Assembly: GCF_902713615.1 (NCBI RefSeq)
Contig: NC_052149.1
Coordinates: forward strand, 87,561,519-87,625,518
Source of the DNA: Scyliorhinus canicula
Taxonomy: Eukaryota
Reading direction: 5' to 3'
Length of the DNA: 64,000 nucleotides
Both the position numbers and the translations under genes were made by a program. Of the stretch, positions 9,850 through 13,000 are shown piece after piece. Numbering within the stretch: the stretch's first letter is position 1; every line of letters starts with the position of its first letter. The notes under the pieces are model-generated. The model saw only the letters and a list, made by a program, of their open reading frames with translations, had not been told where the DNA came from and did no database searches.

Positions 9850-10076
9850 AAGCACCCACCCAGTACGGTGTGTGGGTGAAGGGGCCCCCCGGAGTGCAGG
9901 GGACTACCCGCGTGGCGGACACACAGTGGACGGCCATGGCGGGTGTCCCCGGGACAAGGGGGAACCCCGGAGCGCAGGGACCCGACCGCATGGGGAGAGC
10001 AGTGATAGTGGACATCCTGGACGGCCCCCTAACAAAGGGAAACCCCAGAGGACAGGGGCGTGTCCACCGGACAAAT
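9850..10076 (+). repeat. Three degenerate 78-nt repeats with conserved predicted stem-loop directly upstream of the ORF2 ATG
   Basis: CCCC(G/A)GAG..CAGGG recurs at 9887, 9965 and 10043 (exact 78-nt period); one homologous copy lies at 61329-61400(-) in the second L1. Confidence 0.75.
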
Positions 10077-13000
10077 ATGGTTAACCCCACAGGAGCAAGG
10101 GGGCAGAAGCCCCCCACCAGAATAGTCACCTGGAACGTAAGGGGACTTAACGGCCCAGTGAAGAGATCTAGAGTCCTCACCCACCTTAGAAACATGAGGG
10201 CCGACATAGTCTTCCTCCAAGAGACGCACTTGAGGGAGCAGGACCAACTGCGGGTAAGAAAGGGCTGGGTGGGACAAACCTATCATTCCTGTTATGGGGC
10301 AAGGGCCAGGGGGGTGGCGATCCTGATTGGCAAGAGGACAATGTTTAGGGCGACAAAGACGGTTACGGACCCAGGGGGACGGTATGTCATGGTCAGCGGG
10401 GCCCTGGATGGGGCGCCGGTAGTTCTAGTTAACGTGTATGCGCCCAACTGGGACGACACGAGCTTCATCCAAAAGACCATGGCAGAAATCCCGGACATAG
10501 CGACGCACCGACTAATCATGGGGGGGGACTTCAACTGTGTACAGGACCCAACGACGGACAGATCAAACCCCAGAACGGGGAAAACCTCAAACATGGCAAG
10601 GGAACTCAGTCACTATATGGAGCAGATGGGAGCAGTAGACCCCTGGAGATTCGCCCACCCGGGGGAGAAAGAATTCTCTTTCTTCTCCCCAGTACACAAC
10701 GTGTACACCAGAATTGACTTCTTTGTGGTGGGGAAAACGGTGCTTCCAGAGATAGACAAGGTGGAATACTCTGCAATTGTGATATCAGACCACGCTCCAC
10801 ACTACATGGATGTGCGGCTAGAGACGGGAAGGGCCCAGCGCCCCAAATGGAGGTTGGACGGTGCCTTACTAGCTGACAAGGCCTTCAGCGAAAGGATAGC
10901 GCAGGCCATAGCGGAGTACACTGGGATCAACCAAAACGGGGAGGTCTCACCCTCCACGTTCTGGGAAGCGCTTAAGGCCGTACTAAGAGGGGAAATCATA
11001 GCCTACAAAGCGCAAAGAGATAGGGAGGAAAGGGTGGCTAGGCAGAAGCTGGTCGACTCCATACTGGAGGTAGACCATAAATACTCCGAGGCCCCGACTG
11101 TAGAACTCCTGGCGGAGAGAAAAGAATTACAAAGGAACTTTGACCTGCTCTCCACCAGGAAAGCAGTACACCAACTCCGCCAGGCACGCGGGGCCCTATA
11201 CGAACACGGAGACAAAGCCAGCCACCTGTTGGCCCACCAGCTGAGAAAGCAGGCAGCCAGCAGAGAAATTGCGCAAATCAGAGATACCAGAGGCACGTTG
11301 GAAACAGAACCAGAGAGGATTAACAAAACCTTCAAGGCCTTCTACCAAGAGCTGTACACCTCAGAGCCCCCAACGGGGAAGGCTGGGATGAACCGGTTTC
11401 TTGACGGACTGGACATACCAGTTGTGGGAGAGGGCAGAAAACGGGATCTGGAAGCACCACTAGCACTGGGAGAGATCATGGAGAGCATTAGCTCCATGCA
11501 GGCGGGGAAGGCGCCGGGACCGGACGGATTCCCGGCGGACTTCTACAAAAAATTTGCGACAGCGCTGGCCCCGCACCTGCGGGAGATGTTCACAGACTCG
11601 CTAGCTAGGGGCATGTTGCCACCCACGTTAGCACAGGCCTCAATCTCGCTGATACCTAAGAAAGACAAAGACCCAACGGAATGTGGGTCATACAGACCCA
11701 TATCTCTGCTGAATGCAGACGCCAAAATACTGGCCAAAATCCTAGCCAAGAGGCTAGAAGACTGTGTACCTGAGGTGGTCACAGAGGACCAGACGGGCTT
11801 TGTCAAAGGTAGACAGCTTACCGCGAACATCAGGCGCCTACTGAACGTGATAATGACCCCCTCCGGGGAGAGAACACAAGAGGTGATCGTCTCCCTGGAC
11901 GCAGAAAAGGCCTTCGACAGAGTCGAGTGGAAATACCTCATAGAGGTACTGGAGCGGTTCGGGCTTGGAACAGGGTTCACCGCTTGGGTAAAGCTCCTGT
12001 ACAACGCTCCCATGGCGAGTGTACAGACCAACAATACCAACTCCCAATACTTCCAGCTGCACAGGGGCACCAGACAAGGATGCCCACTGTCCCCGCTGCT
12101 GTTCGCACTAGCAATTGAACCGCTAGCAATCGCGCTCAGGGCAGCAAAAAATTGGAGGGGGATCCGAAGGGGAGGTAGAGAGCACAGAGTCTCACTCTAT
12201 GCGGATGATCTGCTCCTCTATATCTCGGACCCACAAAGCAGCATGGATGGAATCATCGCGCTCCTGAAAGAGTTTGGAGCCTTCTCGGGCTACAAACTCA
12301 ACATGAGCAAAAGTGAGATCTTCCCAGTACACCCGCAAGGGGGGGAGGGAGCAGCACTAAAGGGGCTGCCGTTCAAACAAGCCCGACATAAATTCCGCTA
12401 CCTGGGGATCCAAATAGCCCATGACTGGAAAGGGATCCACAAATGGAACCTCACCAGCCTGACGGAGGAAGTTAAAAAGGACCTGCAAAGATGGAACACA
12501 CTCCCGCTCTCCCTCGCGGGGAGAGTTCAGACGATCAAAATGAACGTACTGCCCAGGTTCCTCTTCCTGTTTAGATCCATTCCGATCTACATCCCCAAGG
12601 CCTTTTTCAAAGCGCTGGACAAACTCATCATGGCGTTCGTATGGGGGGGTAAAAATGCTAGGATCCCAAAGAAGGTCTTACAAAAAACAAAAACCAGGGG
12701 AGGGCTAGCCCTCCCGAATCTACAATTCTACCACTGGGCAGCAACAGCCGAGCGAGTAAGGGGATGGATCCAGGAGCCAGAAGCTGTGTGGGTGCGTGCG
12801 GAGGAGGCCTCCTGCATGGGAACCTCCCTCCGGGCCCTCGCCACGGCAGCACTCCCATCCCCACCCAAAAAACACTCCAGCAGCCCAGTGGTGACAGCCA
12901 CCCTCCAATCCTGGAACCAACTGCGGCAGCAACTTGGCCTGACCAAAATGTCGAACAGGGCTCCCATCTGCAACAACCATAGGTTCACACCAGCACTGAC

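Follow-up and report, generated by a model that had tools for sequence, protein, structure and literature searches.

Introduction

How is the second open reading frame (ORF) of an L1 retrotransposon reached by ribosomes when a long spacer separates it from the first? ORF2 translation from the bicistronic L1 RNA is still unsettled, even in mammals, and the difficulty grows in non-mammalian L1s that have spacers of 0.6-0.9 kb. The question is raised here by a 64,000-nucleotide (nt) stretch of the 4.2 Gb genome of the shark Scyliorhinus canicula (contig NC_052149.1, positions 87,561,519 to 87,625,518 of the forward strand), hereafter the window, in whose coordinates positions are given. The window holds an L1 of a fish-type family in which ORF1 (8245-9291, plus strand; 348 codons in the ORF list, with the stop codon TAG at 9289-9291) and ORF2, encoding an endonuclease and a reverse transcriptase (10077-13343, plus strand), lie 785 nt apart (spacer 9292-10076, plus strand).

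The 235 nt before ORF2, which are the 3' end of this long spacer, had been singled out in a preliminary description of the window as a triplicated, conserved cis-acting RNA for ORF2 translation. We find a cis element at a fixed distance from the ORF2 start codon in four L1 lineages of this genome, with a centre of 14-30 nt that is better conserved than its flanks; the covarying structure that had been proposed along with it is not supported. Tentatively, we read the repeated units as a sequence-specific ORF2 leader that would act in the sense L1 RNA. The short motif fixed by the ORF2 start, in an abundant and near-identical young family of more than 1000 copies, is a concrete and mutable target for reporters.

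The repeat array and its distribution

The array occupies the last 235 nt of the spacer and consists of three direct repeats spaced by exactly 78 nt, with 24-nt cores at 9879, 9957 and 10035 that are 75-79% alike. It ends at the ORF2 ATG at 10077, as had been described, and was not reported by Tandem Repeats Finder. Unit 1, of the distal type (9850-9927, plus strand), is degenerate, has a diverged core and is matched weakly by a profile of the unit (9879-9915, E 0.04). Unit 2, of the middle type (9928-10005, plus strand; E 2e-14), has its core at 9953-9981, and unit 3, of the proximal type (10006-10076, plus strand; E 4e-17), has its own at 10031-10059 (plus strand; AACAAAGGGAAACCCC...GCAGGGGC), the first 14-15 nt of which are invariant in all lineages. 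The motif ACAAAGGGAAACCC is present at 10032 and, on the minus strand, at 61372, and ACAAGGGGGAACCC at 9954. The claim that a divergent L1 in the same window carries one homologous unit at the same position was borne out as well: a single unit at 61329-61400 on the minus strand, matched by the profile at 61321-61397 (E 5e-20), adjoins the ORF2 ATG (61328-61326) of a second, old copy.

The L1 family to which the first copy belongs is very young and abundant, with all 40 scored copies of 9800-10300 elsewhere in the genome being 99-100% identical and 1513 candidates found at first look. Since copies so alike cannot inform on covariation, diverged copies were gathered from the same genome, yielding about 250 units from four L1 lineages (A, B, C and D). 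Lineage A is the young family of the window and has three units; lineage B is old, includes the second L1 of the window and has one unit; lineage C has three units in 20/20 copies checked; and lineage D has mostly three, with rare copies carrying two, four or ten. The period is 78 nt, equal to 26 codons, in C, D and A, and the proximal unit ends 10 nt upstream of the ORF2 ATG in every lineage. The unit is single in the oldest lineage and was triplicated in the ancestor of the three younger ones, and the positions in the array have become distinct unit types, namely proximal, middle and distal. The distal unit has kept its core in lineage C and lost it in D and A, and such decay of the distal unit in the younger lineages only is as expected if the units nearest ORF2 matter most. 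The lineage-D copy with ten tandem 78-nt units lies at G000:C9:118877100-118878340, and the copy with four is another member of the same lineage.

Conserved core and rates of change

What selection keeps in these units is a linear purine-rich core, ACAAAGGGAAACCC followed by GCAGGGG, and not the stems. The alignment columns 27-40, which correspond to ACAAAGGGAAACCC, are invariant in seven unit types, and differences between paralogous units are far fewer in the 30-nt core than in the arms (1/30 versus 14/37, p=0.0008; 2/30 versus 13/37, p=0.007; 4/30 versus 15/37, p=0.016). Descent has left the flanking arms loosely self-complementary, and they drift with no compensating changes.

The units are, moreover, the sole part of the spacer still alignable between lineages. 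The segment 9900-10100 of the window can be aligned in about 100% of the lineage C copies, and 9300-9850 in none of the copies of lineages B and C. Alignability alone is weak evidence, because the remaining spacer is of low complexity and turns over by slippage: overall, the spacer is rich in purines and poor in T (G 331, A 208, C 191, T 55), and its poly-G tract (9708-9742, plus strand) is hypervariable, with 8-41 nt among copies that are otherwise 99% identical.

The 9 nt directly before the ATG change fastest of all, at 6/9 positions between B and A and 4/9 between D and A. The ORF2 ATG of lineages C and D is set in CAGGTAAGTAT (exact in 16/50 C and 19/27 D copies), which we take to be a perfect 11-nt complement of the 5' end of U1 small nuclear RNA, that is, an ideal 5' splice donor. 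Its counterpart is GGTGAGTAT in lineage B and CCGGACAAATATGG in the young family (10066-10079 in the window), the latter replacement amounting to 4 changes in 9 nt, as many as the unit's remaining 62 nt show.

Start codons and reading frames

The layout of ATG codons fits ribosomes scanning through the units. Unit 2 in the window has two ATGs, 9936 (context acggccATGG) and 9990, both sharing the ORF2 frame without an intervening stop, and the recurrent upstream ATGs of the other lineages are all in that frame too (-87 and -141 in D; -87, -141, -165 and -237 in C; -9 and -99 in B). The sole out-of-frame ATG, at -56, occurs in B and in part of C. From it, a 17-codon upstream ORF runs to just before the ORF2 ATG in B; in C a TAA leaves only 3 codons of this ORF, and D and A have lost the ATG.

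Besides the ORF2 frame, one other frame is open through the units, for which the T-poor composition alone suffices. In the window this frame ends with a TAA at 10082-10084 (plus strand), 5 nt past the A that begins the ORF2 ATG (ATGGTTAA), and the same stop/start geometry is found in all lineages, as ATGGYTGA in B and C and as ATGGTTAA in D. In a coding test of the units, the ratios of non-synonymous to synonymous changes in the three frames were 0.56, 0.64 and 0.75, so that no frame stands out, and the value of 0.64 belongs to the frame with stops.

In the window copy, the frame that ends at the TAA forms a long spacer ORF from the ATG at 9281, which overlaps the ORF1 stop, to 10084. Because the poly-G length varies between 8 and 41 nt, the reading frame across the spacer is scrambled; among 20 near-identical young copies, the spacer length modulo 3 is 0 in seven, 1 in eight and 2 in five, and the ORF reaching the TAA has no ATG downstream of the poly-G. 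A relay of ribosomes from the spacer ORF into ORF2 was rejected, the frame across the poly-G being intact in just 7/20 young copies. Upstream of the tract, six ATGs (9281, 9305, 9323, 9638, 9650 and 9668) share one frame that is open up to the poly-G, the first of them overlapping the ORF1 stop (ATGGGAAGTAG), and judging from these reading frames, a genuine small ORF may occupy the spacer's upstream half.

A possible ORF2 leader

Several features together lead us to the reading of the units as a sequence-specific ORF2 leader, namely their fixed position and distribution, their being the sole alignable part of the spacer, the stronger conservation of the core than of the arms, the ATG layout and the period of 78 nt or 26 codons. 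We put this reading forward as a possibility that stays short of probable, and we infer from the same features that the action would be at the RNA level and the role one in translation. In this proposed mechanism, the core would bind a trans-acting factor, either a protein or a ribosomal component, and the start-codon layout of the units would funnel scanning or reinitiating ribosomes into ORF2. Ribosomes starting at unit AUGs would find themselves in the ORF2 frame with no stop behind; the out-of-frame upstream AUG of the oldest lineage had its frame curtailed by a stop before it disappeared; and ribosomes in the only other open frame would terminate 5 nt past the ORF2 AUG.

A number of observations weigh against this reading. 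The RNA reads over the spacer are too sparse to be informative, and the antisense strands of the units fold as stably as the sense strands, so that the RNA level is not told from the DNA level. When the unit and ORF2 are compared copy by copy between the A family and the B copies, the proximal unit shows 0.30 differences per site and ORF2 codon positions 1, 2 and 3 show 0.23, 0.20 and 0.38, respectively; the whole unit thus changes almost as fast as ORF2 third positions, and constraint outside the core is weak. The in-frame ATG pattern rests on about four independent events, with a chance of about 1 in 80, and was noticed post hoc; as these events are few and related by descent, we treat the pattern as suggestive.

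The last of these points concerns the distribution of the unit outside this genome. The best relatives of the ORF2 protein (ORF2p) are about 50% identical and come from, among others, teleosts and Polypterus. Their spacers are of 0.6-0.9 kb and AT-rich, and the unit was not found in the contigs of these teleost-type L1 relatives with either the unit profile or a covariance model. Both the repeat and its conserved centre are genuine, and peculiar to this L1 clade. A literature search found no paper on fish or shark L1 spacers.

Possible promoter monomers or neutral duplication

The 5' untranslated regions (UTRs) of mouse L1s hold tandem promoter monomers of about 200 nt with YY1 sites, and the shark units could likewise be promoter or enhancer 'monomers' that drive an ORF2-only or internal transcript. 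This DNA-level explanation, which we regard as unlikely yet as a serious rival, had been offered in the preliminary description on account of YY1-like, SOX-like and kappaB-like boxes, represented in the units by GCCATYTT, AACAAAG and GGGAAACCCC, respectively. It has in its favour that the conserved part is a linear motif and not a structure, and that the units resemble the mouse monomers in being tandem, in varying in number between lineages (from 1 to 10 copies) and in having a YY1-like box, which is common in the proximal units of lineages B (15/27) and C (39/50). That box is, however, nearly lost in D (2/27) and gone in A (0), the young, active and most prolific family. Unlike the mouse monomers, the shark units are 78 nt long and internal, lying between ORF1 and ORF2; their core does not recur in the 5' region of the element, the ratio of observed to expected CpG is flat along the element at about 0.6, and a promoter needs neither a fixed 10-nt distance to the ATG nor in-frame ATGs.

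The RNA data, comprising three oligo-dT runs, were examined for the same explanation. They reveal low-level L1 expression with a coverage valley over the spacer and a depth that climbs from about 9900-10100, which speaks for an internal transcript, but the valley is equally explained by G-richness together with reads from old copies that match the conserved parts only. No start sites were seen: the units showed no pile-up of read starts, and the runs no splice joints, at a depth that was very low and with uneven mapping of old copies. All RNA reads over 10052 and 10061 have G and C where the window has A and T, from which it follows that the transcribed copies carry GGGCAGGGGCGCG, like lineage D.

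A further explanation is that the array is a near-neutral tandem duplication, alignable merely since the remaining spacer is low-complexity purine-rich DNA turning over by slippage. The closeness of the unit divergence to that of ORF2 third positions (0.30 and 0.38) agrees with it, as do the drift of the arms, the lack of covariation described below and the unconstrained length of the poly-G. We hold neutrality, likewise a serious rival, to be improbable nevertheless, given that the excess conservation of the core over the arms is significant in three independent paralog comparisons, that seven unit types share an unchanged block of 14 nt, that all C copies and the majority of D copies have kept three units, and that the ATGs are in frame.

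Proposed RNA structure

A structured RNA, either an internal ribosome entry site (IRES) or a reinitiation hairpin resembling a TURBS (a termination upstream ribosome-binding site), with stems kept by compensatory change, was the explanation preferred at the outset. The predicted folds are compatible with it up to a point. Relative to dinucleotide shuffles, the minimum-energy hairpin around the ACAARGGGRAACCC centre has a z-score of +0.30 in unit 2 (predicted hairpin 9934-9993), -1.52 in unit 3 (predicted hairpin 10015-10071, which ends shortly before the ORF2 ATG; -1.5 to -1.9) and -2.28 in the unit of the second L1 (predicted hairpin 61396-61329), all of which are modest values. Among majority forms computed for 80-nt units, those of the proximal, middle and lineage-C distal units form a hairpin around the core with z-scores of -1.3 to -2.8. 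Unit 1 folds differently, without the hairpin (z +0.48), and the majority distal unit of lineage D is likewise without the fold (z -0.25). The stems that had been listed do occur in the sequence, where they form the minimum-energy folds of units 2 and 3 and of the unit of the second L1; with unit 1 lacking the hairpin, the three examples said to covary are these three units and not one array. Furthermore, the outer and middle stems as listed pair different, non-homologous columns in different units, through register shifts.

The attractive idea that the units differ in sequence yet keep their pairing fails once many copies are counted. In an alignment of 100 proximal units (A1), 82.0% of the pair cells are paired versus 81.9% when the 3' partners are permuted, and the covariation score is 0.117 versus 0.114, with 129/500 shuffles as high or higher. 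The null result was repeated on 132 units of all three types aligned with a covariance model built from A1, an alignment biased towards structure, in which 81.1% versus 81.0% of the cells are paired and the score is 0.129 versus 0.127. RNAalifold predicted 0 consensus pairs. The proposed structure does fit far better in register than when slid, an advantage which says merely that the shared sequence is self-complementary.

One pair, formed by columns 17 and 60 of A1, passes through U-A, U.G and C-G across lineages; both its sides, however, lie in CpG contexts and vary independently, and within lineage C there are as many C.A mismatches as C-G pairs. When 5' and 3' arms were swapped across unit types, the chimeras folded as well as or better than the native units (for example -44.5 versus -36.3 and -30.5 kcal/mol). 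The covariation, RNAalifold, arm-swap and register results together indicate that the pairing potential is inherited sequence and not a maintained structure, and covarying RNA structure is thus not supported. A scan of 9200-10400 against Rfam gave chance-level matches (E 0.9-8, far below the gathering scores), in keeping with the earlier statement that the element is not a known Rfam family.

With its AUGnnURA, the stop/start overlap is similar in layout to known reinitiation sites, and the TURBS of caliciviruses and influenza B (PMC11921876, PMC3035654) likewise have a motif in a stem loop at most about 70 nt upstream of such an overlap. A TURBS is defined by UGGGA after a purine, a run of 6 or more consecutive pairs with the helix 26 (ES7) apex of 18S ribosomal RNA (rRNA), a flanking P1 stem (motif 2/2*) and a nearby stop (PMC11921876). 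UGGGA is absent from the shark core, which reads AAAGGGAAAC in all lineages, with AAGGGAA standing in its place. The organism's own 18S region was located by means of two conserved 18S strings, and Rfam confirmed it; its helix 26 apex is GUUAUUCCCAUGAC, with which just GGGAA/UUCCC, that is 5 contiguous bases, can pair. The duplex energy of core and 18S is -19.4 versus a shuffled mean of -20.6, with 60% of the shuffles as good, and the whole 18S fragment gave the same null. Flanking stems of the P1 type are predicted, yet without covariation. A stop does follow 5 nt past the AUG, but just 7/20 young copies have the upstream ORF and its ATGs in one frame, which is thus not kept. With the motif absent and the 18S pairing no better than chance, the element is not of the TURBS class, and this candidate was rejected. 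In the course of the search, an 18S ribosomal DNA copy (G000:C24:26470930-26472900) was found to match the full Rfam small-subunit model (1-1831) within just 1070 nt, indicating that this copy is internally deleted.

A structured RNA with stems kept by compensatory change is now very unlikely. Much the same low standing falls to the idea that translation runs through the units, yielding an N-terminal extension of ORF2p from ATG 9936 or 9990 or the C-terminus of a spacer ORF, for although the ORF2 frame extends open for 273 nt further upstream in both the window family and lineage D, ATG 9936 is in a strong start context and the period equals 26 codons, the substitution ratios are alike in three frames including the stop-bearing one, the arms of the middle unit change amino acids freely in their majority forms, the T-poor composition keeps frames open by itself, ORF2p of the relatives starts at the position equivalent to ATG 10077 and the frame of the spacer ORF is not maintained.

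Comparison with known ways of translating ORF2

Human L1 ORF2 is, according to what Alisch et al. are said to have found in 2006, translated by unconventional termination-reinitiation across a 63-nt spacer, with no specific inter-ORF sequence needed. The shark element is similar in that ORF2 lies downstream of a translated ORF and has to be reached without a conventional cap-proximal start, and it differs in having 785 nt and a conserved motif where the human element has 63 nt. In SART1, a silkworm long interspersed element (LINE), a UAAUG stop-start coupling aided by RNA structure was reportedly described by Kojima et al. in 2005. This is again a non-long terminal repeat (non-LTR) element with ORF2 initiation tied to termination at an overlapping stop; in SART1, however, the overlap is where ORF1 itself ends, with the structure lying downstream, whereas shark L1 ORF1 ends 785 nt upstream.

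A precedent for the ORF2 leader is mouse L1, in which a cis RNA upstream of ORF2 drives ORF2 translation; this IRES is purine-rich, is bound by hnRNPL and nucleolin and has an activity shown by reporters (PMC3592465). This precedent is a further reason for our reading, since both are cis elements on a dicistronic L1 RNA, purine-rich and directly upstream of ORF2. The two are not homologous in sequence, and the mouse spacer, at tens of nt, is not tandemly repeated.

The units could, in a more specific version, serve as modular 'landing pads' through which ORF2 translation tolerates the frame-scrambling poly-G. In whatever frame it left the poly-G, a ribosome would then either terminate well upstream and rescan to an in-frame unit AUG, or stop translating 5 nt beyond the ORF2 AUG and start anew at that codon, and the conserved core would hold the 40S subunit on the RNA. 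We think this version decidedly improbable as it stands; if true, it would be a new, repeat-based way to translate a second cistron across a spacer of about 0.8 kb in a vertebrate retrotransposon.

One teleost-type L1 relative (Logan run ERR6050747) has a 106-codon ORF at positions 1611-1931 that ends 8 nt into ORF2 (ATGACTGA). The AUGnnUGA overlap in this relative has the same geometry as in the window L1 and is set in a wholly different, AT-rich spacer.

Other features of the L1 copies

The translation of ORF1 in the window has a C-terminal domain typical of L1 ORF1p. ORF2 has 1088 codons in the window copy, compared with about 1270 in its relatives, and downstream of its end at 13343 there is a 161-codon ORF at 13419-13904. 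This ORF could hold the missing ORF2 C-terminus, in which case the window copy would be broken there. In the old L1 copy on the minus strand, G-runs split by AC (GGGGGGGAC-like units) have expanded at 60975-61045, inside the 5' part of ORF2.

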